The notes below the pieces were generated by a model, which made no database searches, had not been told where the DNA came from, and worked only from the letters and a program-made list of their open reading frames with translations. From NCBI GenBank assembly GCA_002269645.1, contig NIVC01000254.1, forward strand, positions 186,001-250,000: 64,000 nt of DNA. The letters are read 5' to 3'. Positions 22,122 to 49,115 of the stretch are shown here, one piece after another. Numbering within the stretch: the first letter of the stretch is position 1; every line of letters starts with the position of its first letter. The stretch comes from Macrostomum lignano. Lineage: Eukaryota. A program made the translations under genes and the position numbers.

Positions 22122-23507
22122 TCAAGCGGTCTCAGTAACGGCCTGAGCAGCAGCAACTAGATCAGCCTCCTTCTTGGTTTCCTGATGATGCTGACAGCAG
22201 GCCGTCTTCAGCTTGTCTTTTATACCACGGACCAGATCCTCCTCCTCAGTGGTGGTCTCATGCGCGTGCTGCACCAGCATCTCGTTGCCGCGGGTGACGC
22301 CCCAGTTGTCCGGCTTGCTCATGGCGGACGAGTACGGCCGACCGCTGGCCGGGTTGAGGTTCTCCCAGTACTCGCGGTTGGCCCGGGCTCGAACCCACGG
22401 CTTCGTGTGCATCTTGAGGCCGCCGCCCCAGACAACGTGCTTCTCAGAGCCGGCTGGGAATCGCCCCCGCTCGGCGGCGAGCTCCTCTGCAACGGCGCGG
22501 ATGTGGTAGGGCTCGAAGCCGCAGCAGCCGCCGATGAAGCGGACGCCAAGGTCGTAGGCCTCCCTGGCGTAGCGGTGCATGTCCCAGCGGTTGCAGATCC
22601 TACTCTCCAGAGCGAATGGGAACTCGGGCAGGTCGATGAAGCCCTGCTTCCCAGCATCCGGAGTCATGTAGGCCAACGGCTGGCACATCAGGTAGGCCTT
22701 GAGATTCTCGCGTTCCAGAGCTTCCTTCATCAGCTTGATCGCTTCCAGGCTGACGAACGGATCGTAGTGGCAGTTGACGCCCACGATTTTGGCACCAGCG
22801 CGAGCCATACGGATGGCACAGTGGCCCGCGGAGTTGCCGTGCATGTCGCCTTGCGGTCCGATGCACATGCTGCAGGCCACGGGCATTCCGGTCTCCAGCC
22901 CGACCTCGATGGCCCACTCCGCCTCTTCGACGTGCTCAAAGTACTCACACAGAATGAAGTCGACGCCTTCGTCTTTGAAAGCGCGCATCTGGCCTCGGAA
23001 AATCTCCTTGGTGTCCTCCTTGCTGGCGCCGCTCAGGTAGGTCGGGGTCTGGCAGACACCGCCGAGGAACAGGGCGCCGCCCTCCTGGGCCACCTCGCGG
23101 GCCACCCGACAAGCGGCAGCGTTGATGTTTGTGCACTGGCAAAATTAAAAATGAAATTTCGGTATTCCAACGCTCACGAGAGGATTGCTGAGATGGCAAG
23201 GTTCAAGTGGGATGCTGGTGTCTTCTGCACTTACCCCGTACTTCTGCGATGCAGTGTTGCCCCGATTAGAAAGCTTGTCATCGCTGGCGTAGAAGGTGAA
23301 CGCCTGCATCACATCAGAGCCGGCTCTGAGAAACTCGCGATGAAGCTGACGCACAGCTTCCGGATGCTCGACAACCGCTTCCGGTGTCCACGGCCCCGCC
23401 TTGACGTAGCCGCGCTTCTCCAGGGCGAACACGAAGCCGCCGTCTCCGATGACAACCTCGCCGTTGTCAAGCCGCTCCATAATGCCGCGTCGCTCGATGG
23501 TGCCCAT
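22122..23507 (-). CDS. BHMT: Betaine-homocysteine S-methyltransferase, copy 1 (2 exons, 428 aa)
   Basis: Exons 23507-23235 and 23135-22122 with a 99-bp GT-AG intron. Motifs [33 protein letters not shown], Zn ligands GVNC and [25 protein letters not shown]. Confidence 0.97.
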
Positions 23508-23615
23508 GGCTGCCGTTGGTAGAATTCCGCTAGAGAATGCTTCGTGGAAATGGGAAATTGCTTCTTCTTTCCAAGTTTTTGGTTATGGAATTTTTAGAGC
23601 GCGTTGGAATTTTCC

Positions 23616-23623
23616 TATTTATA
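23616..23623 (-). promoter_or_regulatory. TATA box of BHMT-1
   Basis: TATAAATA on the minus strand about 110 nt upstream of the ATG. Confidence 0.6.
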
Positions 23624-24101
23624 GACGCGGTCATTTCCGGCGACCTTGGCGGCTGGGGGTGGGGAAACCCCCGATTAAAAGCCGGTTTTTGCCGAAACCG
23701 GTCCAGTGACATTCCAGACCGGCAACCGGTTTTGCCTTTCCAGGACGATCTGATAATTATTGCGAAATCGCGTGCACCAAGGTCGCAGATGCGTTGCTGT
23801 TTTTGTCACACCGCCCGGTTGGGTTGGGCAGGCGTTCTGGATTGGCCAGCTATTTCTATTGAGAAAAGGCTCAGGCGGAGAGGTCACGAGGGTCACGTGA
23901 TTGCAAGAGGCAGCTAAAATCGAGGGGTGGAGCTCGGAAGAGGCGAAACTTGAAGTTGCAAATAAAGTTCTGTCGGATTGTTAATTCAGACAGTAGAAAA
24001 TGTCACGTGACCTAATGTACGTTGAAATAGGCTACGCCCTTATCAGCAGTTTCTTGTCTCTCGAACAGTAACTTAGTTTATTTGTCAACAAAGGTAGTTA
24101 A

Positions 24102-24119
24102 ACCTGGTTAGAACCAGTT
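24102..24119. promoter_or_regulatory. CNRG-N6-CNRG (Grainyhead/CP2-type) double site upstream of BHMT-1
   Basis: ACCTGGTTAGAACCAGTT: CTGG (24104-24107), 6 nt, CCAG (24114-24117). A single AACCGGTT also lies at 23724-23731. Confidence 0.5.
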
Positions 24120-24499
24120 AAAGCCACTTGTGTTCTCGCAATTACGAAACTTTTGCTAAATTGGAATTTTCCTTAAAACATAAAATATCATTTTCATTCA
24201 ACTGGAAAATCTACCGAGGTTAGAAAATTCCGCTTGAATTGTTTTCTTCTATAGGAATTTTCTGCAGGCTTCATCTGAGCCTGTCCTGCAGCCCAATAAA
24301 TAGGTCAAGATGCTTAGTTGTTCGAAGATTAACAAATCTTTAGCTTGGGCGACTAAGGCTGGAAGATTAACATCTTCTTGGCCTGCATCTGTCAGGTGAG
24401 AATATTGAGAATTATGAACTTCGATTTTATGCCTCTCTTTTAAAGTTTGTGTCATAAATTTGTAGTTAGGGTAGTGTGCAGCAGTGTGTTTCAGAGCCA

Positions 24500-25085
24500 C
24501 TCATCACGGTGACCCCATGATGGTGACCCGTCACGTTGACTCCCTCGCGGTGACTCAATCACAGTGGTTTTATCACGGGGACTCCCATCATGTTGACTCA
24601 ATCACGGTGAGTCTATGATGTTGACCCATTCACGGTGACTCCATCACGGTGACTCCATCATGGTGACTCCATCACGGTGACTCCATCACGGTGACTCCAT
24701 CACCTTGACTCAATCACGGTGACTCATTCACGGTGACTCCATCTCCTTGACTCAATCACGGTGACTCATTCACGGTGACTCCATCACCTTGACTCAATCA
24801 CGGTGACTCAATCTCGGTGTTTCAATCACAGTGACTCCAAGATGTTGACCCATCACGGTGACTTCATCACGGTGACTCCATCACGGTGACTCCATCACGG
24901 TGACTCCATCACGGTGACTCCATCACAATGACTCCATCACGGTGACTCCATCACAATGACTCCATCACGGTGACTTCATCACGGTGACTTCCATCACAAT
25001 GACTTCATCACGGTGACTCCATCACGGTGACTCCATCACGGTGACTTCCATCACGGCGACTCCATCATTTTGACCCAATCACGGC
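24500..25085. repeat. 14-bp minisatellite TGACTCCATCACGG
   Basis: Degenerate tandem units in the BHMT-1/DMGDH intergenic region. Confidence 0.9.
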
Positions 25086-25339
25086 ACCTCAGCACTACTA
25101 CATGAACCTGTAGTTTGAGATGAGAACCATACACAATTCATTGAAATTTCATTGCCTATTAATTTTATGAACAGAAATTGAAAATGATTACAGGTGAAAT
25201 ATTCTTTTCAAAAGGTGAATTAGGTAAACAGAGACGCCACCTCATTCTGTTTGGCGCCTTCCATTTCAGCCTGTTTGCAATGCATTGAGTCATTCGGTGC
25301 CCCTTGAGTCATTTGGCGCTTTTAGGGGTTGGCGTCCCC

Positions 25340-26235
25340 AATGAATCCGCCATTTGGCGCCCCCCATCGTATATTTTTGGCGCCCCTATTGGATCTATTT
25401 GGCGCCCCTATTGGATCTATTTGGCGCCTCTATTGGATCTATTTGGTGCCTCCATTGGATCAATTTGGCGCCCCCATTGGATCTATTTGGCACCCCTATT
25501 GGATCTATTTGGCGCCCATATTGAACCTATTTGGCGCCACCATTTGATCTATTTGGCGCCCCCATTGAATCTATTTGGCGCCCCCATTGGATCTATTTGG
25601 CGCCCATATTGAATCTATTTGGCGCCACCATTTGATCTATTTGGCGCCCCCATTGGATCAATTTGGCGCCCCTATTGGATCTATTTGGCGCCCCCATTGG
25701 ATCTATTTGGCGCCCCCATTGAATCAATTTCGTGCCCCTATTGGATCTATTTGGCGCCCCCATTGGATCTATTTGGCGCCCCCATTGGATCTATTTGACG
25801 CCCCCATTGCATCAATTTGGCGCCCCTATTGAATCTATTTGGCGCCCCCATTGAGTCAATTTGGCGCCCCTATTGGATCTATTTGGCGCCCCCATTGAGT
25901 CAATTTGGCGCCCCTATTGGATCTATTTGGCGCCCCCATTGAATCTATTTGGCGCCCCCATTGGATCTATTTGGCGCCCCCATTGGATCTATTTGGCGCC
26001 CCCATTGGATCAATTTGGCGCCCCTATTGAATCTATTTGGCGCTCCTATTGGATCTATTTGGCGCCCCCATTGAATCTATTTGGCGCCCCCATTGGATCT
26101 ATTTGGCGCCCCCATTGGATCTATTTGGCGCCCCCATTGGATCAATTTGGCGCCCCTATTGAATCTATTTGGCGCTCCTATTGGATCTATTTGGCGCCCC
26201 CATTGAATCTATTTGGCGCCCCCATTGAATCTATT
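25340..26235. repeat. 22-bp minisatellite ATTTGGCGCCCCCATTGGATCT
   Basis: About 40 tandem units. Confidence 0.93.
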
Positions 26236-26701
26236 TTAAGCGCACAAATTTCGGTTATTGCATGCTGATTCAGATCTGAACTTCACATAAACATTAACTT
26301 GGTCACAGTCACAATCTTGAATATGCTTGAAATTATAATAGCGATATTTTTCCAGGCACGTATGTTAGTGTTTACACCCAGCTGTGCAACAAACTGTGCG
26401 TGTGTGTTGACAGCCCCCGCATGAGCTGTGCTTGTTATGAACTTTTCGGGTGCAATCCGTATTTTCCCTTGTTTCTTTTTTTAAGTTCTAACAGAAAAAT
26501 GGCATATACTATTTTCTCAAGTATGGGTAGTCTCACTTTCCTAGAGTGACTCACATTTAACCTTGGCGAGCAACTTCATTTAAACAAGATTTAATAACTT
26601 TGCCATTACGGCTATAATTTTCGTTTTGGTTCTATCAAGTTGTGTCCAGTTTGTTCAAGTTTACTTGAACCGAAATGACTGAATTGAGTAAACACACGGA
26701 A

Positions 26702-26719
26702 AACCGGTTTAAACCGGTT
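26702..26719. promoter_or_regulatory. Perfect 18-bp palindrome AACCGGTTTAAACCGGTT upstream of DMGDH
   Basis: Two AACCGGTT sites at 10-bp pitch; identical copy at 43808-43825. Confidence 0.6.
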
Positions 26720-26863
26720 CTTCTGCTGTCTGCCGCAGCAAACTCTTGCCCCTGTCTAGTGGGTTGCTGACTTGTACAGGTTTGAGATTAGTCAGAGTGG
26801 CCTTGAAGTTCTGGGGGGTGTGGACGCGCAGGTCATGTGATCTGTCTTTTTTGCTTTCTTCAG

Positions 26864-26883
26864 AATACTACTGTGTAATCTAG
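26864..26883 (+). other. Probable 20-nt non-coding 5' exon of DMGDH
   Basis: Pyrimidine tract plus CAG acceptor (26861-26863) and GTAAG donor (26884); next acceptor at 27993-27994, just upstream of the ATG. Confidence 0.5.
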
Positions 26884-27054
26884 GTAAGAGTAGTATAGTG
26901 CTTGAAATCCAAATATTTTAAGCTATTTTATTTCTTCTCTTAGTTTCTCCTGTAGCTCAACTTGGCATACCTACTCAAAGCTGCAAGTGTTGATTAAAAA
27001 ATTGTGTTGCGTAGTGTTGAGTAAAAATAATAAGTGTAAAATTTATAGCCTGTG

Positions 27055-27952
27055 CTCAGTCTCAGTCATAGATTGTTTACAGTCTCAGTCATAGATTGTG
27101 TACAGTCTCAGTCATAGATTGTTTACAGTCTCAGTCATAGATTGTTTACAGTCTCAGTCATAGATTGTGTACAACAGTCTCTGTCATAGATCGTTTACGG
27201 TCTCAGTCATAGACTGTTTACAGTCTCAGTCATAGATTGTGTACAACAGTCTCAGTCATAGATTGTGTACAACAGTCTCAGTCATAGATTGTGTACAACA
27301 GTCTCAGTCATAGATTGTGTACAACAGTCTCTGTCATAGATTGTTTACGGTCTCAGTCATAGATTGTGCACAGTCTCAACCATAGACTGTGTACAACAGT
27401 CTCAGTTATAGATTGTGTACAACAGTCTCAGTCATAGACTGTTTACAGTCTCAGTCATAGATTGTGTACACTCTCAGTCATAGATTGTGTACAACAGTCT
27501 CAGTCATAGATTGTGTACAACAGTCTCAGTCATAGATTGTGTACACTCTCAGTCATAGATTGTGTACAACAGTCTCAGTCATAGATTGTTTACAGTCTCA
27601 GTCATAGATTGTGTACAACAGTCTCAGTCATAGATTGTGTACACTCTCAGTCATAGATTGTGTACAACAGTCTCAGTCATAGATTGTTTACACTCTCAGT
27701 CATAGATTGTGTACAACAGTCTCAGTCATAGATTGTGTACAACAGTCTCAGTCACAGATTGTGTACACTCTCAGTCATAGATTGTGTACAACAGTCTCAG
27801 TCATAGATTGTTTACAGTCTCAGTCATAGATTGTGTACAACAGTCTCAGTCATAGATTGTGTACACTCTCAGTCATAGATTGTGTACAACAGTCTCAGTC
27901 ATAGATTGTTTACACTCTCAGTCATAGATTGTGTACAACAGTCTCAGTCATA
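27055..27952. repeat. 23/26-bp minisatellite CAGTCTCAGTCATAGATTGTGTA(CAA)
   Basis: Tandem units; same family as 9410-10228. Confidence 0.95.
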
Positions 27953-28011
27953 GAGATTGCAGTCAGCGCTGGTCGTTAGACGATGTCACGGCAGGTTGTA
28001 AAGAATATTTA

Positions 28012-31000
28012 ATGGAAATGTTCATTCTCAGTAGTGTCAAAAGCATCAGTTGTTCTGCATTATCCTACCCTCGCAGGGCTCTCTCGTCTTCCACAGCGCA
28101 CCAGCGCCAGCACCCTCTGTCCAAGCGATCGAGCAATGAAGCCGAAGTTGTAATCATTGGCGGTGGCATTGTGGGCGTCAGCACTGCTTACCATTTGGCT
28201 AAGGCCGGAGTTAAGGATGTTGTACTGTTGGAGAAATCTGAACTTACCGCCGGTTCTACTTGGCACGCTGTGAGTAGCGTGTTTAGCGTATGGTTGATAA
28301 AATTGCTGACAAAATGTTAAATAAAATATTGAATTTTTGTTACTTTTATCTCTGTGAATAATTTTACTTCAAAAAAAGACAGTTATGTTGATTTTATCTC
28401 GCAGTTAAGTGTTCCATTCCTTTGTAACAGTTCAGTGCCATTCCTTTGTAACAGTTCAGTGCCATTCTTTTGTAACAGTTCAGTGCCATTTCTGTCTAAC
28501 AGTTTAGTGCCATTCCTGTCTAACAGTTCAGTGCCATTCCTGTGTAACAGTTCAGTGCCATTCCTGTCTGACAGTTCAGTGCCATTCCTGTGTAACAGTT
28601 CAGTGCCATTCCTGTGTAATAGTTCAGTTCCATTCCTGTGTAACAGTTCAGTGCCATTCCTGTGTAACAGTTCAGTGCCATTCCTGTGTAATAGTTCAGT
28701 GCCATTCCTGTCTAACAGTTCAGTGCCATTCCTGTCTGACAGTTCAGTGCCATTCCTGTCTAACAGTTCAGTGCCATTCCACTGTAACAGTTCAGTGCCA
28801 TTCCTGTGTAACAGTTCAGTGCCATTCCTGTGTAACAGTTCAGTGCCATTCCTGTGTAACAGTTCAGTGCCATTCCTGTGTAACAGTTCAGTGCCATTCC
28901 TGTGTAACAGTTCAGTGCCATTCCTGTGTAACAGTTCAGTGCCATTCCTGTCTAACAGTTCAGTACCAGTTCTGTCTAACAGTTTAGTGCCATTCCTGTG
29001 TAACAGTTCAGTGCCATTCCACTGTAACAGTTCAGTGCCATTCCTGTGTAACAGTTCAGTGACATTCCACTGTAACAGTTCAGTGCCATTCCACTGTAAC
29101 AGTTCAGTGCCATTCCTGTGTAACAGTTCAGTGCCATTCCTGTGTAATAGTTCAGTGCCATTCCTGTGTAATAGTTCAGTGCCATTTCTGTTTAACAGTT
29201 CAGTGCCATTCCTGTGTAACAGTTCAGTGCCATTCCTGTGTAACAGTTCAGTGCCATTCCTGTGTAATAGTTCAGTGCCATTCCTGTGTAATAGTTCAGT
29301 GCCATTCCTGTGTAACAGTTCAGTGCCATTCCTGTGTAATAGTTCAGTGCCATTCCACTGTAACAGTTCAGTGCCATTCCTGTGTAACAGTTCAGTGCCA
29401 TTCCTGTGTAATAGTTCAGTTCCATTCCTGTGTAACAGTTCAGTGCCATTCCTGTGTAACAGTTCAGTGCCATTCCTGTGTAATAGTTCAGTGCCATTCC
29501 TGTCTAACAGTTCAGTGCCATTCCTGTCTGACAGTTCAGTGCCATTCCTGTCTAACAGTTCAGTGCCATTCCACTGTAACAGTTCAGTGCCATTCCTGTG
29601 TAACAGTTCAGTGCCATTCCTGTGTAACAGTTCAGTGCCATTCCTGTGTAACAGTTCAGTGCCATTCCTGTGTAACAGTTCAGTGCCATTCCTGTGTAAC
29701 AGTTCAGTGCCATTCCTGTGTAACAGTTCAGTGCCATTCCACTGTAACAGTTCAGTGCCATTCCTGTGTAACAGTTCAGTGACATTCCACTGTAACAGTT
29801 CAGTGCCATTCCACTGTAACAGTTCAGTGCCATTCCTGTGTAACAGTTCAGTGCCATTCCTGTGTAATAGTTCAGTGCCATTCCTGTGTAATAGTTCAGT
29901 GCCATTTCTGTTTAACAGTTCAGTGCCATTCCTGTGTAATAGTTCAGTGCCATTCCTGTGTAATAGTTCAGTGCCATTTCTGTTTAACAGTTCAGTGCCA
30001 TTCCTGTGTAACAGTTCAGTGCCATTCCTGTGTAACAGTTCAGTGCCATTCCTGTGTAATAGTTCAGTGCCATTCCTGTGTAATAGTTCAGTGCCATTCC
30101 TGTGTAACAGTTCAGTGCCATTCCTGTGTAATAGTTCAGTGCCATTCCTGTGTAATAGTTCAGTGCCATTCCTGTGTAATAGTTCAGTGCCATTCCTGTG
30201 TAACAGTTCAGTGCCATTCCTGTCTAACACACAGAAAATGTTCTATCAAAACTGTGTCCCAACACGCAGGCCGGCCTCACCACATTCTTCCACCCGGGCA
30301 TTAACGTGCGCCGCGTCCATTACTACAGCATGCAGCTGTACTCTCAGCTCGAGGCGGAGACTGACCAACCAGTGGGTCTGCACACTCCAGGCTCCCTGCG
30401 CCTCATCACTACGCCGACTCGCATGGACGAGGCCCGATATCAGATGTCCCGGGCAGCCTGGTGCCAAGCCGAACAGCACCTAGTCGGACCGGAGAAATGC
30501 TTGGAATTGTGTCCACTGCTCAACATGAGCACAGTGCTGGGTGGGATCTACAACCCTGGAGATGGTCACATCGATCCCTACTCGGTCACAATGGCGCTAG
30601 CCGCCGGGGCGCGTAAGTATGGCGCCGAGCTGTACCAGAACAGCCAGGTACGCGCCACTAGCCAGGACTCAAAAGGTATCTGGACAATAGTGACTGATCA
30701 CGGCGAACTCAAATCCAAGCATCTGGTCAACGCGGCTGGATTTCACGCTCGTGACGTTGGAAAACTGTCGGGATTGGACCTGCCAATCATTCCGGTGCAT
30801 CATCAGTACGTCATCACCAAAGCTGTGCCTGAGGTGGTCGAACTGAAGCGAGAGCTTCCTGTACTGCGTGACTTGGAAGCCTCCTACTATCTTCGCCAGG
30901 AGAAGCAGGGCCTCTTAGTTGGGCCGTACGAGTCTGCGGAGAACATGATGCTCTGCACTGACTGGTACGATAACGGGGTGCCGGACTCGTTCGGTAGGGA

Positions 31001-34000
31001 GCTGTTTGAGCCGGACCTTGGCCGAATCATGCCTCACCTGGAGCGCGCCATGGAGATGGTGCCGGCGATGCAGAACGCCGAGATTCAATCCGTCATATCC
31101 GGGCCGATCACCTACAATGCGGAGAATGCCGGACTGATTGGCCCGGTGGAGGGGCCGCTGAATTATTGGTTGCTAGGCGGCCTTGGTTACGGCATAATCC
31201 ACGGTGGCGGCGTTGGCAAATACGTGGCGGACTGGATTCGTACTGGCGAACCGCCGTACGATTTGATTGAGCTGGACGCTAACAGGTATGGCAGAGTTTG
31301 GGGTCGGCAATTGTGTGTTTAGACTGGGAAACCGTGTGTTTAGATTGGGGCAACCGTTTCTTCGGAGTGGGACAATTTAAAAGTCAGGGCCGCTATACGT
31401 ACACCTTGTGTGACCGCTTACCTTTTTACGCATCCGTGTGCGTGCTCCGGGATGAGCGGATCGATCATCGAGCTGCTTGACTTTTCGCTTTTGCCCCAAA
31501 GCGAGCCAACTACCCAACTAACCATCCGACAGGTACGGCTGGTGGGCCGACCGGAGCTACACGCACGCGAAGAGCCGCGAGACCTACGGGCTGAATAACG
31601 CTGTCGGCTATCCCAAGGAGGAGCGATTCGCCGGCAGGCCAACGAAACGCGCTGCTCAGACCAGCGCCCTGTACGACGAGTTGAAATCGGCCGGTGCCGA
31701 GTTCGGCTTTCACAACGGCTGGGAGCAGCCGCACTGGTTCGGCTTGACCGAGGAGGAGCGACGCTACGAGCCTTCTTTCCGACGAGGGAACTGGTTCCCA
31801 GCGATGCAGCGGGAATGCGAGGGAGTGCTCAACCGGGCTGGCGTTATGGATATTACGCCATTTTCAAAGTTCGAGATTTCTGGTATGTGGCGTTAGGGTT
31901 TGAACTAGTGTCACTCTGAATCTGCCAATGTGTCACTCTGAATCTGCCAATGTGTCACTCTGAATCTGCCAATGTGTCACTCTGAATCTGCCAATGTGTC
32001 ACTCTGAATCTGCCAATGTGTCACTCTGAATCTGCTAATGTGTCACTCTGAATCAGCCAATGTGTCACTCTGAATCTGCTAATGCGTCACTCTAAATCAG
32101 CCAATGTGTCACTTTGAATCTGCCAATGTGTCACTCTGAATCAGCCAATGTGTCACTTTGAATCTGCCAATGTGTCACTCTGAATCAGCCAATGTGTCAC
32201 TCTGAATCAGCCAATGTGTCACTCTGAATCAGCCGATGTGTTGTCACTCTGAATCTGCCAATGTGTCACTCTGAATTAGCCAATGTGTCACTCTGAATCA
32301 GCCAATGTGTCACTCCGAATCTGCCAATGTGTCACTCTGAATCAGCCAATGTGTCACTCCGAATCTGCCAATGTGTCACTCTGAATCAGCCAATGTGTCA
32401 CTCCGAATCTGCCAATGTGTCACTCTGAATCAGCCAATGTGTCACTCCGAATCTGCCAATGTGTCACTCTGAATCAGCGAATGTGTCACTCCGAATCTGC
32501 CAATGTGTCACTCTGAATCAGCCAATGTGTCACTCTAAATCTATCATTGTCACTTTGAATGTCTGAATGTCACTCGTTAGATGCAGGAGGCTGTGTGCAC
32601 CCTGGCGCACCTTAAGCGACATTGTCACACAACCGGCCAGAGACATTGCTGCCCGTTTCGCCGACTCCCCTAAGCAGACACACAAGCGCGCGGATACGTA
32701 CGCAGTCATACGCACAGGCACACAGTCACACAGGAGTGTACAGCGGCCCTTTTATCGTTAGGCATGTACGCTTTACCGTGCCTTGGGGGTTGGCCCTCAA
32801 AGGCGTTAATTGCACGAGCAGAGCCAAGCCGAGATTCCAATTCAGCCCTAAATTAATGTGACTGCACTTGGAATCGAGCCTGGGCCGCTGGCACATCAGA
32901 GCCTGCGCTGGACCGCTGGGCTCCGGCCTCAGTTCTGAATCTGACAGTTGTCCAATGGCCAGTCATTAGAATCCATAACCATAATCCAAGAAATATTGTT
33001 TTTCACTGGGTTTTCTCATTGCATTCAAAATATCAAGGTTTCCAAGCAGAATGCATCTAACAAGACCAACCCTCAAAAATTCTCAACAAGGCCCTCGAGC
33101 CGGTGAATTCCTGGACCTGGTGACTGCAAACCGACTGCCCAAAGTGAACCGCACCTGCATCACGCACATGCTCACGCCAAGGGGCCGAGTGTTCTCTGAG
33201 ATGACTCTGACTTGCTTGCCAGCCGATGATGGCCAACAGAAGTTCCTGGCCCTGACCGGTTCCGGCTCCGAGATGCACGACCTCATCTGGCTGAAGGACT
33301 GGCGACACAAACTCCGCTTCCAGGACGGCGTCAAGATCGACAACGTCACGGATTCGATCGGCTGCCTGTCTGTAGCCGGTCCGCTGTCCCGCGAAATTCT
33401 TCAGTCGTTGACCTCGGAGAGCCTCGATGCGGGGTCTTATCCGTTTCTGCAGGCTAAGCAGCTGCAAATTGATGGAGTCGACTGCTTGGCCATCAGAATA
33501 TCCTACACAGGAGAGCTGGGCTGGGAGCTCTACTGCGGGATCGGAGAGCTGCCCAGGCTGTACAAATCCATCTGGCGGTCTGGACAGCCGCGCGGTCTGG
33601 TGAACTTCGGCTCGTACGCGATGAACTCGCTCCGGCTGGAGAAAGGGTTCGCCATGTGGGGAGCCGAGATGAACTGCGACACTGGCCCATTGGAGGCTGG
33701 CCTCGGCGGCTTCATCAGGCTGGGAAAGTCTGCAGATTTTGTTGGGAAAGCTGCCGTGGCGGAGGCGAAGCTGAAACTGCAACAGGATGGAGCCCGTCAG
33801 TTGAGGATGCTGCGAGTTGACAGTGTTGACGTGGATCCTGAAGGCAACGAATCAGTCTGGTTGGACGGCAAGGTGAGCAAACCGTACCTGGTTTTACTTA
33901 TTTCATAGATTATCGAACAGTTTATAGTAAAATATGAAAGCGAGTTAACCTACTCGCTTATAAAATCATTTTATAAAATCAAATAAAATCAAAATCATTA

Positions 34001-35935
34001 TCCCTAAACAAACAAACAAGTATGATAATTACAGACAGATTAAAAAGTAGGGTTTCCTTGGTTGCTCAGAATCGTGCGTTCGTTTGATGTGGCATTGTTA
34101 TTAACGGAGTACAGTGGTCTATTGTTCCATAGCTAACTAATTTCCGGGCATTAATCAAATCATTTAACTGAGTGGTTAGAACAGAGCAACTAAACAAAAT
34201 GCTATTGTATTTGTACCAGTATTCCATTCTTCATGCGGTACAATGCAGAATTCCCTAAGCTAATCTATTCTTCCTACTTTAGTAAAGATTATTAAAAGCT
34301 CCTCCAATTCATCTGACTTCCTCATAGAGGCATTAATCTTGTATTTGCATCATATATACCGGTAGATTTGTACTTTAGTGTACGGTAATATAGAGATATA
34401 ATGAGTTGGAAATTTTGGCTAAATCGTTCAACCTTAGCAAGGGCCTTGATACATGAATGATGTGTAACTTTTACATGTACGTTTAAATCGTGAAACTTTT
34501 TATGCAAAACCTTGAGTTTAAATCTCACCGAATCTAGATCTATCCACCAAATCTCTATTCTTCTGCCTAAATCAACCTAAATCTAGATTCATCTACCTAA
34601 AGCTGGACTCATCAACCTAAATCTAGACCTATCTACCTGAATTTAGATTCATCTAACTAAATCTAGATTCATCTACCTAAATCTAGACCCATCAACCTAA
34701 ATCTAGACCCATCAACTTAAATCTAGATTCATCTATCTAAAGCTAGACTCATCAACCTAAATCTAGACCTATCTACCTGAATTTAGATTCATCTAACTAA
34801 ATCTGGATTCATCTACTTAAATCTAGATTCATCTACCTAAATCTGGATTCATCTACTTAAATCTAGATTTATCTAACTAAATCTGGATTCATCTACCTAA
34901 ATCTAGATTCATCTACCTAAATCTAGATTCATCTACCTAAATCTAGATTCATCTACCTAAATCTGGATTCATCTACCTAAATCTAGATTCATCTAACTAA
35001 AGCTAGATTCATCTACCTAAATCTAGACCTATCTACCTGAATTTAGATTCATCTAACTAAAGCTAGATTCATCTACCTAAATCTAGATTCATCTAACTAA
35101 AGCTAGATTCATCTACCTAAATCTAGACCCATCAAACTAAATCTAGACCCATCAAACTAAATCTAGACCCATCAAACTAAATCTAGACCCATCAAACTAA
35201 ATCTAGACCCATCAACCTAAATCTAGACCCATCAAACTAAATCTAGACCAATCAACCTAAATCTAGACCCATCAAACTAAATCTAGACCCATCAAACTAA
35301 ATCTAGACCCATCAAACTAAATCTAGACCCATCAAACTAAATCTAGACCCATCAAACTAAATCTAGACCCATCAAACTAAATCTAGACCCATCAACCTAA
35401 ATCTAGACCCATCAAACTAAATCTAGACCAATCAACCTAAATCTAGACCCATCAAACTAAATCTAGACCCATCAAACTAAATCTAGACCCATCAACCTAA
35501 ATCTAGACCCATCAACCTAAATCTAGACCCATCAAACTAAATCTAGACCCATCAAACTAAATCTAGACCCATCAAACTAAATCTAGACCCATCAAACTAA
35601 ATCTAGACCCATCAAACTAAATCTAGACCCATCAAACTAAATCTAGACCCATCAAACTAAATCTAGATATATCTACCTAAACCTTCGCAATAAACCACCA
35701 CTCAAACCCCTAAAAGGTGGTCGGCAACACGACATCCGGTAGCTACAGTTTCAGCCGCGGTCACGGACTCGCCTTTGCATACGTGCCCGCCAGCCTGGGC
35801 GCCGGCACCCAGCTGGAGGTGGATCTTCTCGGTCGTCGCGTCCCGGCAGTGGTGCTGTCGAAACCACCGTTGCTGCCGGAGCAGGCGAGAAAGAAGAAAC
35901 CCGAAGCGGCATCCGTTGGTTCGAGTCAGCAATGA
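28012..35935 (+). CDS. DMGDH: Dimethylglycine dehydrogenase, mitochondrial (5 coding exons, about 874 aa)
   Basis: Exons 28012-28269 (alternative start 28018), 30270-31285, 31533-31882, 33091-33872, 35717-35935; 2625 nt with consistent phases. Transit-peptide-like N-terminus; FAD motif VIIGGGIVG; [18 protein letters not shown] (flavinylated His context); [12 protein letters not shown]; LRLEKGF; [10 protein letters not shown]. The TTFFHPGIN and EERFAGRP motifs favour DMGDH over SARDH. Confidence 0.95.
28410..30228. repeat. 24-bp minisatellite GTAACAGTTCAGTGCCATTCCTGT, in a DMGDH intron
   Basis: About 75 units; source of the 709-aa and 615-aa repeat ORFs. Confidence 0.97.
31910..32545. repeat. 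22-bp minisatellite TGTCACTCTGAATCTGCCAATG
   Basis: About 28 units in a DMGDH intron. Confidence 0.95.
32690..32930 (-). mobile_element. tRNA-derived SINE
   Basis: Minus strand GAGGCCGGAGCCCAGCGGTCCAGCGC..GGCTCGATTCC gives A-box-like and B-box-like (32870-32880) elements without a complete cloverleaf. The 3' boundary is a guess. Confidence 0.5.
34540..35680. repeat. 20-bp minisatellite ATCTAGACCCATCAAACTAA / ATCTAGATTCATCTACCTAA
   Basis: Two variant zones within the last DMGDH intron. Confidence 0.95.
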
Positions 35936-37296
35936 TCTGGATCACGATAGTCATTGTGGTTCATGATGACGATTAGAAAATTGATTGTGTACAGATAGAG
36001 ATAGATTCGTGATTAGATTGGGATATAAACATGATTAGATTGGAATACAATCGTGATTATATTGGGATAATCGTTATTAAATTTGTATATAATCGTGATT
36101 TATATTGGGATAATCGTTATTAGATTTCGATATAATCGTGATTAGATTGAGATAGAATCGCGATTAGTTTTAGATAGAACCGTCATTAGTTCGCTGTTAT
36201 TAGGATTCATTGTAGATATTGACAGGGATATGTTATAATGTCACTTCGTTAAGTACGACCTTTTTGATTGATTTATTTCCTTTAACAAATGTTTGTTTCC
36301 TAATTATAATGTAAATCTTCCATCGGACTCAGTCCGGAAATTCTCGTCACAAAATATGTTCGTTCAATAGTTTATCTATAAGATCTATATATAAAAATAG
36401 ATTTGTGGGTTAATGTATTTATTAGGGTAAAATTCTGTCATTAAATGCCCTTGACAGAAACTGGTGCAGATTTGATTTATTTTTTGTTTACTTTATTATA
36501 CTTCTAAAATTGTTTATAAAATTTGGATTTTGCTTAATCTTGTTCTCATTTTTCAGATCTCTCAGTAATTTCGGTTGCTGCCACGTAGTGCGAGAAATCA
36601 TTGATTTAGTAAATTTTTATGCTGTCTTTATTAATTAATAAATATTATGTTATAAGCAATCTTTTGTAAAATGATCCTGATTAGTAATGCGCATTCTAAT
36701 AAATTAAATTTACATACCAATAGCTACAGTTCTCGTCGTAAATACCTTTTTTTTTTAAATACATCCTTATTTATTGCCGGTGTGTGTTCGTAAAACTGTG
36801 CTTTTTCCGGCTTGAGAATAATTTAACACATTTTCTAATGTTAGTTAAAGGTTTGAAAAAAATAAATTTAAAATAAGGGCAAAGTTTTCAATGTGGACGA
36901 AACAAACAGGGTTTTTTTAAATTTCAGTATATTTATTTTGCTGTGGGGTGGCAGCCGTACAGTCTAAAATTTCACTTAGCTTATACTAGACGTCTATAGA
37001 CCTAGTAATGCTCGCTAAAACAATTTAATGTTGACTGGAGTAAATTGAAAGCAATAATGAATAAGTTTTTTATAGCTAATGTCTAAGAAATGATGAAAAA
37101 ATTAAAACTGTCAGAAACGTTTTAGCTTACTGCGTTTTAATTTGCAAAATTATTCTTGTAGAGTAGAATGACCTTTCTCGAAACTTTTTATCATCGATTT
37201 ACTAAGACTTCGTGTATGAATTTCGCAGCAGCCATAATTATCAATGAGGAAGATGACAATGAAACAAATAAAAAGCAAATGGTTGATTTATTTTTT

Positions 37297-40200
37297 CTAT
37301 TTCTTCCTCATCTGCTGGCCCAGCTGCTTCACTCGATTGTCTTCCTCTTCGGTGGTCTCGTGCGCGTGCTGCACCAGCATCTCGCTGCCGCGGGTAACGC
37401 CCCAGTTGTCCGGCCTGCTCATGGCGGCCGAGTATGGCCGACCGCTGGCCGGGTTCAGGTTCTCCCAGTAGTCCCGGCCAGACCGGGCTCGAATCCACGG
37501 TTTAGTGCTCATTTTCATTCCGCCGCCCCAGGCGATGTGCTTCTCGGAGCCGGCTGGGAATCGGCCTCTTTCGGCGGCGAGCTCCTCGGCGATGGCGCGG
37601 ATGTGATAGGCCTCGAAGCCGCAGCAGCCGCCAATGTAGCGGACGCCAAGGTCGTAGGCAGCCCTGCCAGATTTAAAATATACCGATTTTACTACTTATT
37701 ATACTACTGCTGATTCTAATATAGACTTGCGAAATCGCTTCTGTTGCACTGCATGCTGGTTTAAAACAATTGACAATTTTAATTCAACAATTTGAAGCTT
37801 CAAAAAGTATGAATTAGACTAATGGTGAATTGATTAGACTAATAGTGAATTGATTAGACTAATGGTGAATTGATTAGACTAATGGTGAATTGATTAGACT
37901 AATGGTGAATTTATTAGACTATTGGGGCATGGTTTAGACTAATAACGCATGAATTAGACTAATAAGGCGTGGATTAGACTAATAACGTATGAATTAGACT
38001 AATAAGGCATGGATTAGACTAATAAGGCATGGATTAGACTAATAAAGCATGGATTAGACTAATAAAGCATGGATTAGACTAATAAAGCATGTATTAGACT
38101 AATAAAGCATGGATTAGACTAATAAGGCATGGATTAGACTAATAAGGCATGGATTAGACTAATAAAGCATGGGTTAGACTAGTAAGGCATGGATTAGACT
38201 AATAAAGCATGGATTAGACTACTAAAGCATGGGTTAGACTAGTAAGGCATGGATTAGACTAATAAGGCATGGATTAGACTAATAAGGCATGAATTAGACT
38301 AATAAGGTATGGATTAGACTAATAAGGCATGGATTAGACTAATAAGGCATGGATTAGACTAACAAGGCATGGATTAGACTAATAAGGCATGGATTAGACT
38401 AATAAAGCATGGATTAGACTAATAAAGCATGGATTAGACTAATAAAGCATGGATTAGACTAATAAAGCATGTATTAGACTAATAAGGCATGGATTAGACT
38501 AATAAGGCATGGATTAGACTAATAAGGCATGGATTAGACCAAAGGACAATAAATGTAGATTCAACCTGTCTCACCTAGCGAAGCGGTGCATGTCCCAGCG
38601 GGTGCACAATCGACTCTCCATGGCCAAAGGAAACTCGGGCAGGTCGATGCAGCCCTGCTTCTCAGCATCCGGAGTCATATAGGCCACGGGCTGGCACATC
38701 AGGTAGGCCTTGAGATTCTCGCGCTCCAAACCAGCCTTCATCAGCTTGATCGCTTCCAGGGTGACAAACGGATCGAAGTGGCAGTTGACGCCCACGAGTT
38801 TCGCACCAGCGCGAGCCATACGGACGGCGCAGTCGCCCGCGGAGTTGCCGTGCATGTCGCCTTGCGGTCCGATGCACATCGTGCAGGCCACGGGCAGCCC
38901 GGTCTCCAGCCCGACCTGCGGCGGGGGGGGCGTTGTTGGTTGGCTAGATTAGCAATCCATTATCACGTACTTTAATTTCCTGATTTGGCTAGATTAGCAA
39001 TCCATCATCGTGTACTTTAATTTCCTGATTTGGCAAGATTAGCAATCCATCATCGTGTACTTTAATTTCCTGATTTGGCTAGATTAGCAATCCATCATCG
39101 TGTACTTTAATTTCCTGATTTGGCTAGATTAGCAATCCATCATCGTGTACTTTAATTTCCTGATTTGGCTAGATTAGCAATCCATCATCGTGTACTTTAA
39201 TTTCCTGATTTGGCTAGATTAGCAATCCATCATCGTGTACTTTAATTTCCTGATTTGGCTAGATTAGCAATCCATCATCGTGTACTTTAATTTCCTGATT
39301 TGGCTAGATTAGCAATCCATCATCGTGTACTTTAATTTCCTGATTTGCCTAGATTAGCAATCCATCATCGTGTACTTTAATTTCCTGATTTGGCAAGATT
39401 AGCAATCCATCATCGTGTACTTTAATTTCCTGATTTGGCTAGATTAGCAATCCATCATCGTGTACTTTAATTTCCTGATTTGCCTAGATTAGCAATCCAT
39501 CGTGTACTTTTATTCCTTATTTGGCTAAATTAGCTATATATCGTGTACTTTTATTTTCTGATTTGGCTAGATTAGCAATCCATCATCGTGTACTTTAATT
39601 TCCTGATTTGGCTAGATTAGCAATCCATCATCGTGTACTTTTATTCTCTGATTTGGCTAGATTAGCAATCCATCGTGTACTTTTATTTCTTATTTGGCTA
39701 AATTAGCTATATATCGTGTACTTTTATTTCTTATTTGGCTAAATTAGCTATATATCGTGTACTTTTATTTTCTGATTTGGCTAGATTAGCAATCCAATAC
39801 AGCCTGCAATTTTATTAATAATTTGGATCAGTTTGTGGATAATTTGAAAATGCTAGTCCATGGTCGAAACCAATGCCAAAAATGAGGTCTGTTCGAACTG
39901 TTTCGACCATAGACTAACATATTCTTTGCAATTTTTTTAACACCGAGTCGAGTATCTTACCTCAATGGCCCACTCTGCCTCCTCAACATGCTCAAAGTAC
40001 TCGCACAGCACCAAGTCGGCTCCTTCGGCCTTGAAAGTCTGCATCTGGCCACGGAAGATGGCCTGGATTGAAGCTTTGTCACCGCCGCTCAGGTAGGTCG
40101 GAGTCTGGCACACTCCGCCTAGAAACAGGGCGTCACCTTCTTGAGCGACCTCACGAGCAATGCGACACGCGGCGGTGTTGATGGCGGTGCACTGAAATTC

Positions 40201-41358
40201 AAGGGGGGTTGACTATATATTAGCAATCCATTCTATGGGTTTGATAGATTAGCAATCCATTCTATGGGTTTGATAGATTAGCAATCCATTCTATGGGTTT
40301 GATAGATTAGCAATCCATTCTATAGGTTTGGCTATAGATTAGCAATCCATTCTATAGGTTTGCTAGATTAGCAATCCATTCTATAGGTTTGATAGATTAG
40401 CAATCCATTCTATAGGTTTGATAGATTAGCAATCCATTCTATAGGTTTGATAGATTAGCAATCCATTCTATAGGTTTGGCTATAGATTAGCAATCCATTC
40501 TATAGGTTTTGCTATAGATGAGCAATCCATTCTATGGTTTGGCTATAGATTAGCAATCCATTCTATGGTTTGGCTATGATTTAGCAATCTGTTCTATGGT
40601 TTAGCTATAGATTAGCAATCCATTCTATGGTTTAGCTATAGATTAGCAATCCATTCTATGGTTAGGCTATAGATTAGCAATCCATTCTATGGTTTGGCTA
40701 CAGATTTGCAATCCATTCTATAGGTTTGGCTATAGATTAGCAATCCATTCTATGGTCTGGCTATAGATTAGCAATCCATTCTATGGTTTGGCTATAGATT
40801 AGCAATCCATTTGGGTCACTTGGGTCACTTAATATAAGAAGGATCATACAGAATTTTCAGCGTTGTGAAATTTCGATCTTATGAATCCCCTCCCATCCAT
40901 TTTATTAATATGAACGCCAGTTTGAGCTAAATTACTAACGATCTGAAAAAAGTTTTACAAACAGTTTAGTAGAAAGAGTCGAATCAAAAAGTGTGAGGCG
41001 AAATCAAAGAGCTGTTTTTGTATCTCTCCAGATGAAGCGTCGAAGCAGATTGCTCAAGCGTTCTCATGTGCTCAAACTCTAAGTCTCACCCCATACTTTT
41101 CCTGAGCCGTGTTGCCTCTATTGGAAAGCTTGTCCTCGCTGGCATAGTAAGTGAACGCCTGCATCACATCAGAGCCGGCTCTGAGAAACTCGCGATGCAG
41201 CTGCTTCACAGCTTCTGGGTACTCGACCACCGCTTCCGGTGTCCACGGCCCCGCCTTGACGTAGCCGCGCTTCTCCAGGGCGAACACGAAGCCGCCGTCT
41301 CCAATGACAACCTCGCCGTTGTCAAGCCGCTCCAGAATGCCGCGTCTTTTGTTTGACA

Positions 41359-41359
<1 letters not shown>
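37297..41359 (-). CDS. BHMT: Betaine-homocysteine S-methyltransferase, copy 2 (4 exons, 402 aa)
   Basis: Exons 41359-41090, 40191-39961, 38915-38575, 37663-37297; 1209 nt, GT-AG introns with consistent phases; GVNC and GGCCG Zn ligands intact. Confidence 0.93.
37810..38540. repeat. 20-bp minisatellite GGATTAGACTAATAAGGCAT, BHMT-2 intron 3
   Basis: About 36 units. Confidence 0.95.
38940..39795. repeat. 45-bp minisatellite GGCTAGATTAGCAATCCATCATCGTGTACTTTAATTTCCTGATTT, BHMT-2 intron 2
   Basis: About 19 units. Confidence 0.95.
40218..40812. repeat. 28-32-bp minisatellite with core AGATTAGCAATCCATTCTAT, BHMT-2 intron 1
   Basis: Shares AGATTAGCAATCCAT with the 45-bp unit. Confidence 0.92.
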
Positions 41360-41360
<1 letters not shown>

Positions 41361-41422
<62 letters not shown>

Positions 41423-41423
41423 G

Positions 41424-41506
<83 letters not shown>

Positions 41507-41527
41507 GTGTCTGTCTGTGTGTCTGTG

Positions 41528-41612
<85 letters not shown>

Positions 41613-41624
41613 GCCTGTCTGTCT
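41361..41624. repeat. (GTCT)n microsatellite, read as (CAGA)n in the BHMT-2 5' UTR
   Basis: About 66 units ending one base before the ATG at 41359. Confidence 0.97.
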
Positions 41625-41659
41625 GCTGATTTTCCGCACTATCAGTCGCAGCTGTTGCA

Positions 41660-41710
41660 TATATATACCCACAGCTACTCCGTCCAAATGAAAACCAGTT
41701 CCAGCTGGTT
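41660..41710 (-). promoter_or_regulatory. Proximal BHMT-2 promoter: TATA-like box plus CNRG-N6-CNRG site
   Basis: TATATATA at 41667-41660; CCAG-TTCCAG-CTGG at 41695-41708. Confidence 0.5.
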
Positions 41711-42324
41711 TTACAATCAAACTTATCGATTCGAAACTTTTTCTTAAGTTGACCCAAGAAGTCTGAGCATTGGAAAAGATTCGAGATTTCTGAGAGCAGC
41801 TTATCGTGAAACCTAGTAAACATGGCTTCCTACCCTCGTCAAACCCGCAATTCAGGTTCCACATTTCTCTAGTCCAAGGAGTTCCGAAATTTTGCATCGG
41901 AATCAAAATTAATTTTTTTCATTGAAAATAAAACAACTCTTTCTTTTAATAAGCTGTATTCAAACTCACTGTCTCTTTACATCGCGAGATTTTAAATTAA
42001 TCAATCTAATTTTCAAGTATTTCTGTAGATTTACATTCCAGATCTGTTAGTTAACGCAGTCCTTGTTCAGCTTTAGTCTAGATAGTAAAACAATTTTGAG
42101 ACTTGGTCATTATCTGTGAGTAAGCTGCTAGGGGGTAAACTAGGGGGGGGGGGTACGTATTAAACACCTGAGGAATTCTCACGCAGTTCCTCAGCTCACG
42201 TTTTCGATACGTTGCGCCACGAAACTCGCTTTGGCTCAGTTTGGGGCGTTCACAGACAATTTCTGTGTTTGTGTTATATGAATTGAGGGCAGATTTAATG
42301 ATACAGTAGTTTATAAAACTGCTT

Positions 42325-43295
42325 TCTGGGTGCTGAGGTCACTGGGTGCTGAGGACACTGGGTGCTGAAGTCACTGGGTGCTGAGGACACTGGGTGCTGA
42401 GGACACTGGGTGCTGAGGACACTGGCTGCTGAGGTCACTGGCTGCTGAGGTCACTGGGTGCTGAGGACACTGGGTGCTGAGGACACTGGGTGCTGAGGAC
42501 ACTGGGTGCTGAGGACACTGGGTGCTGAGGTCACTGGCTGCTGAGGTCACTGGGTGCTGAGGACACTGGGTGCTGAGGACACTGGGTGCTGAGGACACTG
42601 GGTGCTGAGGACACTGGGTACTGAGGACACTGGGTGCTGAGGACACTGGTTGCTGAGGACACTGGGTGCTGAGGTCACTGGGTGCTGAGGACACTGGGTG
42701 CTGAGGTCACTGGGTGCTGAGGACACTGGGTGCTGAGGACACTGGCTGCTGAGGTCTCTGGGTGCTGAGGACACTGGGTGCTGAGGATACTGGGTGCTGA
42801 AGTCACTGGGTGCTGAGGACACTGGGTGCTGAGGACACTGGGTGCTGAAGTCACTGGGTGCTGAGGACACTGGGTGCTGAGGACACTGGGTGCTGAGGAC
42901 ACTGGGTGCTGAGGTCACTATCTGCTGAGGTCACTGGGTGCTGAGGACACTGGGTGCTGAGGACACTGGGTGCTGAGGACACTGGGTGCTGAGGATACTG
43001 GGTGCTGAAGTCACTGGGTGCTGAGGACACTGGGTGCTGAGGACACTGGGTGCTGAAGTCACTGGCTGCTGAGGACACTGGGTGCTGAGGACACTGGGTG
43101 CTGAGGACACTGGGTGCTGAGGTCACTGGCTGCTGAGGACACTGGGTGCTGAGGACACTGGGTGCTGAGGACACTGGGTGCTGAGGACACTGGGTGCTGA
43201 GGTCACTGGCTGCTGAGGTCACTGGGTGCTGAGGTCACTGGGTGCTGAGGACACTGGGTGCTGAGGACACTGGGTGCTGAGGTCACTGGTTGCTA
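42325..43295. repeat. 16-bp minisatellite GACACTGGGTGCTGAG
   Basis: About 60 units. Confidence 0.95.
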
Positions 43296-43392
43296 AGGAG
43301 CTCCATTTTGAGGATATTCTGCAGCTGAAGATTTAAGGAGAAAGACAGAAAACCAAAATAATTTCAAAAGCCACTATCAGCCACAAACTCAC

Positions 43393-43662
43393 CCCGAATT
43401 TCTGCGATGCAGTGTTGCCCCGGTTGGAAAGCTTGTCCTCGCTGGCATAGTAAGTGAACGCCTGCATCACATCAGAGCCGGCTCTGAGAAACTCGCGATG
43501 AAGCTGCTTTACAGCTTCCGGGTATTCGACCACCGCTTCCGGTGTCCACGGCCCCGCCTTGACGTAGCCGCGCTTCTCCAGGGCGAACACGAAGCCGCCG
43601 TCTCCAATGACAACCTCGCCGTTGTCAAGCCGCTCCATAATGCCGCCTCTTTTGTTCGACAT
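43393..43662 (-). CDS. BHMT: Duplicated BHMT first coding exon; probable alternative first exon of BHMT-2 (90 codons)
   Basis: Intact ATG-initiated 270-nt exon, GTGAGT donor in phase 0, 85/90 aa identical to exon 41359-41090. No exon-2 sequence between 43392 and 41360. Confidence 0.75.
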
Positions 43663-43747
43663 GGTAAATGATGAGGCCGTGGCTGGTGCTGGGACTCTCT
43701 GGTGGATTCTGAACTTTTCGAGTAGCGCGGATTGTTTGAAATCGGGC

Positions 43748-43825
43748 TATTTATATCCACTTACAGCCGAGATTTGCGCCTGTCTCTCTCTCACCCCTCG
43801 GTCTCGGAACCGGTTTAAACCGGTT
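43748..43825 (-). promoter_or_regulatory. Distal BHMT promoter: TATA box plus 18-bp palindrome
   Basis: TATAAATA at 43755-43748; AACCGGTTTAAACCGGTT at 43808-43825. Confidence 0.6.
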
Positions 43826-44194
43826 CTGTTTAACTATTTTATTGACCGATAAAGTCAAACGCTCCTGACCTAGATAGTGCCACGTACCACCGACTCAGTT
43901 GGCCATGGAGATCTGCAAGAATTGACAATATATGAGACTGCAACACAGCATCGATTGGTTAAATAAAGCTTGGTTTTCAGCAAACCAATTGCTAGACTCA
44001 GACCTCCATGATGACTCTCTCTGGAGACTTTGACATGCCGCTGGACTTGCTGCAATATCTATGTTGTCAATGGAAATACCTGGCGAGGTAACTCGCCGCT
44101 AAAAATGTAACTCAGGAAATGGAAAATTCTAATAATTGCAACCGTAAACATAAAGGTCAAATCTTAGATTCCGTTCTTTAATAACAAATAATTA

Positions 44195-48939: not shown

Positions 48940-49115
48940 GCTTTAGCACCAGGGGCTTTAGCACCAGGGTCTTTAGCACCAGGGGCTTTAGCACCAGGGT
49001 CTTTAGCACCAGGGGCTTTAGCACCAGGGTCTTTAGCACCAGGGGCTTTAGCACCAGGGGCTTTAGCACCAGGGGCTTTAGCACCAGGGGCTTTAGCACC
49101 AGGGGCTTTAGTACC
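48940..49115 (+). repeat. 15-bp satellite, right part
   Basis: Resumes in register after the TSD. Confidence 0.95.

Follow-up and report, generated by a model that had tools for sequence, protein, structure and literature searches.

We propose that two adjacent genes of betaine catabolism in the flatworm Macrostomum lignano, encoding betaine-homocysteine methyltransferase (BHMT) and dimethylglycine dehydrogenase (DMGDH), form an ancestral divergent pair that has been kept because the short spacer between them holds regulatory sequence serving both genes, and we put the probability of this reading as a whole at roughly 70%. The pair lies in a 64,000-nucleotide stretch of the genome (contig NIVC01000254.1, positions 186,001 to 250,000; hereafter the window, in whose numbering all coordinates are given unless another sequence is named), where BHMT-1 is transcribed leftward, DMGDH rightward and a second methyltransferase gene, BHMT-2, leftward so that it converges on the 3' end of DMGDH. 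BHMT is a zinc-dependent cytosolic enzyme that turns betaine and homocysteine into dimethylglycine and methionine, and dimethylglycine, which is its product inhibitor, is converted by the mitochondrial flavoenzyme DMGDH into sarcosine and a folate-bound one-carbon unit. As we envisage it, the 0.8-kb unique spacer would drive BHMT-1 and DMGDH divergently; the 5'-5' pairing itself was inherited from at least the cnidarian-bilaterian ancestor. Regulatory sequence in the short spacer, used by both genes, would be the likeliest reason for the persistence of the pair; a break in the spacer would uncouple the production of dimethylglycine from its removal. Because dimethylglycine inhibits BHMT, a single regulatory switch for the two genes may well be worth keeping. 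The shared promoter, the co-expression and the selective reason for the linkage are the parts of this reading that we infer.

The window is eukaryotic nuclear DNA of M. lignano, with spliced genes and very many minisatellites (44 rows of Tandem Repeats Finder output), and in a database search its DMGDH and BHMT proteins are 97-99% identical to M. lignano entries. From 18 to 44.4 kb, tandem arrays included, it can be aligned collinearly with a contig of the public Mlig_3_7 assembly, NIVC01000293.1, and about 94-95% of the nucleotides are identical; to judge from this alignment the window is a second allele or homeologue, some 5% diverged, of a publicly annotated flatworm locus. The annotation of that contig (BOX15_Mlig031806g1, BOX15_Mlig007960g1, BOX15_Mlig026652g1) agrees with ours in its three genes, their order and their strands, and the proteins are 97-100% identical; it differs in that NCBI names all three "hypothetical protein". 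Because an independent public contig has the same three genes in this order, the locus is neither a chance arrangement nor an assembly artefact. An earlier note on this DNA had given the same genes, strands and order (BHMT <- -> DMGDH -> <- BHMT), which both our gene models and NIVC01000293.1 reproduce. The distance of about 3.3 kb that it placed between BHMT-1 and DMGDH was not recovered: from ATG to ATG the two genes lie 803 bp apart in the annotation-supported model, or 4505 bp apart if DMGDH begins at an alternative ATG at 28012. Its description of a repeat-riddled genome is borne out by tandem arrays that occupy 44% of 22122..43825 and 59% of the non-coding DNA of that region.

The two coding exons of BHMT-1 are as follows.

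23235..23507, minus strand: BHMT-1 exon 1, with the ATG at 23507, a GT donor at 23234-23233, phase 0
22122..23135, minus strand: BHMT-1 exon 2, stop codon included; open reading frame (ORF) with an AG acceptor at 23136-23137, matched by tblastn and by Pfam PF02574

Together they encode 428 amino acids around a GT-AG intron whose position is common to Owenia, Actinia, Rhopilema, Priapulus and Liolophura. The product carries a homocysteine S-methyltransferase domain (PF02574, E=7.6e-48, residues 19-309), matches P0121, a public M. lignano protein, at 99% identity, and aligns with the structure of rat BHMT1 (1UMY) over query residues 5-401 and chain residues 9-404 (E=2.9e-187), a full-length similarity that reaches the C-terminal region beyond the barrel. 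Its zinc-ligand motifs, VNCHYDP and a second motif of 10 residues, correspond column for column to VNCHFDP and its counterpart in 1UMY; the zinc-ligand cysteines of mammalian BHMT we take to be Cys217, Cys299 and Cys300. The best database matches for BHMT are 67-74% identical, and those for DMGDH, to animal DMGDH proteins, 55-58%. By these matches BHMT-1 is a bona fide orthologue of BHMT (EC 2.1.1.5), and betaine is the predicted methyl donor of both BHMT-1 and BHMT-2.

DMGDH is modelled with six exons.

24310..24395, plus strand: DMGDH exon 1, with ATG, MLSCSKINKSLAWATKAGRLTSSWPASV and GT donor; 27 of its 29 residues match the first 29 amino acids of the public protein P0001, and it splices in frame to 28077
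28077..28269, plus strand: DMGDH exon 2, with the FAD-binding (flavin adenine dinucleotide) GGGIVG motif and STWHA; the alternative in-frame ATG at 28012 lies just upstream
30270..31285, plus strand: DMGDH exon 3, the remainder of the DAO domain
31533..31882, plus strand: DMGDH exon 4, FAO_M and the start of GCV_T
33091..33872, plus strand: DMGDH exon 5, the GCV_T folate-binding domain
35717..35935, plus strand: DMGDH exon 6, GCV_T_C, stop codon included

This model yields 881 amino acids with GT-AG boundaries at all introns, and 870 of the 881 residues are identical to P0001. It supersedes a five-exon model from the ATG at 28012 (874 amino acids, built from the sequence alone), whose start we retain as a second possibility. 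At the place of a putative mitochondrial targeting peptide, either N-terminus is basic, with hardly any acidic residues. All four domains expected of the enzyme family score above their cut-offs (DAO, FAO_M, GCV_T and GCV_T_C; PF01266, PF16350, PF01571 and PF08669). The protein scores 1055 bits against human DMGDH (5L46) and 316 bits against bacterial dimethylglycine oxidase, and wherever a function is named among its best 120 database matches the name is DMGDH, at 54-58% identity (49% for one long ostracod model). The motif GSTWHAAGL is read across the junction of exons 2 and 3; the histidine of S-T-W-H-A-A-G is presumably the residue of covalent FAD attachment, as in mammalian DMGDH. No second DAO/GCV_T gene and no sarcosine dehydrogenase-like gene was seen in the window. 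On this evidence the gene is a bona fide orthologue of DMGDH (EC 1.5.8.4), and neither a sarcosine dehydrogenase nor a bacterial dimethylglycine oxidase. The consecutive-step biochemistry claimed for the locus at the outset rests on very strong matches to solved structures, 1UMY for BHMT1 and 5L46 for DMGDH.

Between the two start codons lies the stretch on which our proposal turns.

23508..24309, no strand assigned: BHMT-1/DMGDH spacer, 802 bp of unique (non-repeat) sequence between the start codons; candidate shared divergent promoter
23892..23900 and 24002..24011 (span 23892..24011), no strand assigned: two GTCACGTGA(C) E-box palindromes, 110 bp apart, inside the spacer

Among the long non-coding stretches of the locus the spacer alone lacks tandem arrays, and no non-coding stretch is better conserved between the two public copies, at 98% identity where the locus as a whole stands at about 94-95%. 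The GTCACGTGA(C) motif occurs five times in the whole window, where 0.22 matches would be expected, and three of the five fall in the spacer (at two sites, one of them palindromic); both sites are kept in the NIVC01000293.1 copy, where both read as the full GTCACGTGAC. From a repeat-free, conserved spacer with E-boxes we infer a shared divergent promoter that would co-regulate the producer and the consumer of dimethylglycine. In the liver of mice on a high-fat diet, Bhmt and Dmgdh mRNAs rise together (PMC3589430). A bacterial promoter and terminator scan of the spacer was also run and is uninformative for a eukaryote.

The age of the arrangement was addressed by a microsynteny survey that the earlier note had proposed, in which the genomic surroundings of DMGDH or BHMT orthologues were examined in invertebrates other than arthropods. 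In eight species of seven phyla, a cnidarian among them, the two genes are direct neighbours and are transcribed away from each other.

M. lignano: spacer 0.8 kb, divergent
Patiria (starfish): spacer 4.1 kb, divergent
Owenia (annelid): spacer 1.7 kb, divergent
Capitella (annelid): spacer 3.8 kb, divergent
Lingula (brachiopod): spacer 0.57 kb, divergent
Tubulanus (nemertean): spacer 0.70 kb, divergent
Priapulus (priapulid): spacer 0.93 kb, divergent
Rhopilema (jellyfish): spacer 2.3 kb, divergent

The spacers of these pairs measure 571-4108 bp and the orientation is 5'-5' in all eight. Where the neighbour was reached from the BHMT side, it is 54-60% identical to the DMGDH of the window, which is the level of named DMGDH orthologues. 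The genes that flank the pair vary from species to species, Lingula excepted, where JMY is two genes away. Since the divergent pair occurs in several bilaterian phyla and in a cnidarian, it predates Bilateria, so that the ancient bilaterian pair postulated beforehand was a conservative estimate; the species sampled place its origin no later than the cnidarian-bilaterian ancestor, with a few breakages since. Two of the surveyed loci have features of their own. In Lingula anatina (LFEI02000265.1, 1..9429) JMY and a KxDL gene stand beside BHMT-DMGDH, echoing the human order DMGDH-BHMT2-BHMT-JMY, and the conserved block may therefore exceed the BHMT-DMGDH pair. In Tubulanus polymorphus (OZ123230.1, 1..9302) two tandem DMGDH genes of 868 amino acids, a lineage-specific duplication, lie upstream of BHMT.

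The human counterpart at 5q14.1 (DMGDH - BHMT2 - BHMT - JMY) resembles the flatworm locus in that DMGDH is divergent from a BHMT-family gene across a very short spacer and in that an extra BHMT paralogue lies within the locus. The head-to-head arrangement that the earlier note gives for human fits a table of a genome-wide association study (GWAS) that describes single-nucleotide polymorphisms both as "DMGDH intron" and as "BHMT2 2KB upstream" (PMC12389381); the region is associated in GWAS with serum betaine, with dimethylglycine and with their ratios (PMC12389381). The differences lie in the extra copy and in the flank. Human BHMT2 arose by tandem duplication in mammals and lies on that side of DMGDH where BHMT is found, whereas the flatworm BHMT-2 arose independently, sits on the other side, tail-to-tail with DMGDH, and is full-length and BHMT-like; JMY flanks BHMT in human, and none was seen in the flatworm window. 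At a broader scale, several hundred conserved ancestral microsyntenic pairs have been described, among which 5'-5' orientation, short intergenic distances and co-expression are over-represented (Irimia et al., 2012; PMC3514665). Pairs such as HSPE1-HSPD1 and HADHA-HADHB share with BHMT-DMGDH the coupling of non-homologous genes, the divergent orientation kept across many phyla and the short spacer, and differ in that co-expression is documented for these named examples, whereas for BHMT-DMGDH it is a prediction (Irimia et al., 2012; PMC3514665). By its arrangement BHMT-DMGDH is a clean new example of this known class of conserved 5'-5' microsyntenic pairs; it is not named in the main text of Irimia et al. 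(2012; PMC3514665), and our literature searches on BHMT/DMGDH synteny found no paper on an animal-wide linkage. The term "metabolic gene cluster", which the earlier note had applied, overstates the case. Two enzymes of consecutive steps plus a paralogue are present, which is the part that stands; a strict cluster would comprise at least three non-homologous pathway enzymes, and the locus offers only two enzyme types, while the other large ORFs scanned match no pathway enzyme, choline dehydrogenase and betaine-aldehyde dehydrogenase not having been searched for specifically. The tie to osmolyte metabolism that the same note thought probable is conjectural.

The second methyltransferase gene occupies the far side of DMGDH.

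43393..43662, minus strand: BHMT-2 exon 1a (E1a), the first exon in the public annotation (P0123)
41090..41359, minus strand: BHMT-2 exon 1b (E1b), a second intact coding exon 1 with ATG, 90 codons and GT donor; a (GACA)n microsatellite abuts it upstream
39961..40191, minus strand: BHMT-2 exon 2
38575..38915, minus strand: BHMT-2 exon 3
37297..37663, minus strand: BHMT-2 exon 4, stop codon included

BHMT-2 has four exons encoding 402 amino acids, all boundaries being GT-AG, and matches the public P0123; the zinc-ligand motifs (VNCHFDP and the second 10-residue motif) are kept. Tail-to-tail, 1.36 kb separate the DMGDH stop at 35935 from the end of the BHMT-2 stop codon at 37297. BHMT-1 and BHMT-2 are 83% identical in protein (dS 0.43, dN/dS 0.235), and a dN/dS of 0.235 implies that both copies are constrained, under purifying selection. 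In a neighbour-joining tree of 20 BHMT sequences the Macrostomum BHMTs form one clade in 200 of 200 bootstraps; the duplication is therefore lineage-specific and independent of mammalian BHMT/BHMT2. The local expansion suspected beforehand is upheld by this Macrostomum-only clade and by the dN/dS, and as far as tree and substitution rates can tell, BHMT-2 is a recent and functional duplicate of the Macrostomum lineage. Mammalian BHMT2 shifted its substrate, and BHMT-2 could have done likewise.

E1b sits inside the first intron of BHMT-2. It differs from E1a at 13 synonymous and 6 non-synonymous positions (dN/dS 0.12; P=0.003 against one copy drifting neutrally), the homology of the two ends exactly at the ATG and just beyond the GT donor, and both are intact in the NIVC01000293.1 copy; the simplest reading is that they are probably alternative first coding exons. 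Upstream of neither E1a nor E1b was there any likeness to the BHMT-1/DMGDH spacer, and no DMGDH remnant was found elsewhere in the window. An origin of BHMT-2 by duplication of the whole pair followed by loss of DMGDH, which was also considered, is thus unsupported. The intron record of the locus is mixed. Introns after amino acid 90 of BHMT, and at STWHA|AGL and DGK|VVGN of DMGDH, are common to other phyla, while the sites of BHMT-2 introns 3 (37664..38574) and 2 (38916..39960) and of DMGDH introns 3 (31286..31532) and 4 (31883..33090) are uninterrupted in outgroup loci wherever the alignment spans them; BHMT-1 is without the two introns specific to BHMT-2. This suggests lineage-specific intron gain amid heavy intron loss.

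Several observations weigh against our proposal. The upstream exon of DMGDH is backed by one public annotation and by sequence logic, and with a start at 28012 the spacer would be 4.5 kb long and mostly minisatellite. The GTCACGTGA palindrome, the only motif family compared across phyla, is missing from the spacers of Owenia, Lingula, Capitella, Priapulus and Tubulanus, and we have rejected it as a pan-metazoan cis-element. The linkage itself is not universal: no DMGDH lies within 10 kb of the BHMT examined in the sea anemone Actinia; in the acorn worm Glandiceps BHMT and DMGDH are on sequences of differing length, and therefore probably on different chromosomes, so that the pair has probably been split; and the chiton Liolophura has, 9.4 kb upstream of BHMT and on its strand, a DAO/GCV_T gene of uncertain identity as DMGDH (44% over 64 amino acids). 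An alternative reading is neutral retention, in which the ancestral pair persists only because a short spacer is a small target for rearrangement, while the two genes share no regulation and selection does not act on their linkage. In its favor, all spacers are short (0.57-4.1 kb), the GTCACGTGA motif is not conserved between phyla, and some lineages have lost the linkage or changed its orientation. We nevertheless consider this account unlikely, if deserving of serious attention. Eight of eight adjacent cases keep the 5'-5' arrangement, in lineages that parted over half a billion years ago and whose flanking genes are not the same; M. lignano has retained the pair even though minisatellites have filled 44% of the locus; and consecutive metabolic steps are not what one would expect of random survivors. 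Conserved 5'-5' pairs are, moreover, enriched for co-expression (Irimia et al., 2012; PMC3514665). A divergent pair held together by regulatory sequence in its spacer is the reading that we favor.

The remaining alternatives concern the second BHMT gene. One might suppose that BHMT-2, its extra exon 1 or both are decaying pseudogene fragments and that only the BHMT-1/DMGDH pair matters: nothing like the BHMT-1 promoter precedes E1a or E1b, E1b is abutted by its (GACA)n microsatellite with no obvious 5' untranslated region, and the ORF of a long terminal repeat (LTR) retrotransposon lies 1.2 kb upstream of E1a. A complete reading frame with GT-AG at every splice site and intact zinc ligands is hard to reconcile with decay, as are the low dN/dS values (0.235 between the genes, 0.12 between the exons, with P=0.003 against drift of one copy), the intactness of both exon-1 copies in the second public copy and the 402-aa product that the public annotation models from E1a, and we regard decay as highly improbable. 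Still less credible, to the point that we give it almost no weight, is the notion that haplotigs or collapsed repeats created a false second BHMT beside DMGDH. The genome is extremely repeat-rich, and the window differs from the public contig by about 5%, as alleles or homeologues would; yet the two BHMT copies, which differ by 17% in protein, have a dS of 0.43 and carry unlike numbers of introns, are far beyond allelic divergence, and the three-gene order, both exon-1 copies and the same minisatellites recur in an independent assembly.

Beyond animals, the closest parallel is the betaine-catabolism neighbourhood of Roseobacter (PMC3141670), where a BHMT-like gene stands beside DMGDH and SARDH and the same consecutive steps are brought together; the difference is that this neighbourhood is operon-like and prokaryotic, and that only about 26% identity links its BHMT-like protein with the animal enzyme (PMC3141670). 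It would be a bolder extension of our proposal to see the animal coupling as older still, an echo of such a bacterial neighbourhood. We see the neighbourhood as a functional parallel and found no evidence of common descent with the animal linkage: one scan of 185,579 prokaryotic genomes with BHMT-1 returned one 19-aa fragment from a metagenome-assembled genome (MAG) and no DMGDH. That fragment, in a Hyphomonadaceae MAG (JALOSP010000188.1, 4586..4642), is an isolated stretch 84% identical to animal BHMT with the rest of the gene absent, and may be a stray eukaryotic fragment in the bin.

Most of the deeply conserved gene neighbourhoods of animals involve developmental regulators and their bystander genes. 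Conserved pairs of enzymes for consecutive metabolic steps are few and easily tested. It is conceivable, although we hold this stronger claim only tentatively and think it somewhat doubtful, that BHMT-DMGDH is one of the few purely metabolic pairs held head-to-head by selection since before the cnidarian-bilaterian split, with the producer and the consumer of dimethylglycine on one switch, and that it has not yet been singled out in the literature. M. lignano is a flatworm capable of transgenesis. With a compact spacer in many phyla, this experimental host and a human counterpart that has GWAS associations, the pair could offer a practical test case for the idea that metabolic genes are held together by shared promoters. 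Mammals and Macrostomum duplicated BHMT independently, and the use of an extra BHMT copy could be compared between them. The understanding of the betaine pathway itself is unchanged.

Some further features of the locus and its surroundings deserve mention. The public 1124-aa model UniProt A0A1I8IES6 (P0002) is chimeric, in that the C-terminal half of DMGDH is followed by antisense translations; these cover BHMT-2 exons, the two copies of exon 1 and repeats, and every one of them is found as a plus-strand ORF in the window. The retrotransposon upstream of E1a is an uninterrupted ORF of 1272 amino acids (44905..48723, minus strand) encoding an LTR-retrotransposon polyprotein with aspartyl protease, reverse transcriptase, RNase H and integrase domains, and a separate integrase fragment lies near the start of the window (786..1277). 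Between BHMT-1 and the upstream repeats, a 200-aa ORF (20087..20689, plus strand) matches the tetraspanin family (E=1.6e-13), and at the matching place in NIVC01000293.1 no gene is called for it. With few exceptions, each long intron of the locus is filled by its own minisatellite. Those at 38940..39796 and 40209..40811, in BHMT-2 introns 2 and 1, have a 14-nt core in common, GATTAGCAATCCAT, with 36 matches against 0.04 expected, all in those introns. A satellite family ATAGATTGTGTACAGTCT... occurs at 9409..10229 and in DMGDH intron 1 (27057..27954). Another family, with a unit of 15/16 nt, GGGCTTTAGCACCAG and its variant GGGCGCCAGCACCAG, forms separate arrays on both sides of the locus.

8380..8949, 10925..11484, 13045..14938, 44192..44524, 48940..49115 and 49655..50394: GGGCTTTAGCACCAG/GGGCGCCAGCACCAG arrays

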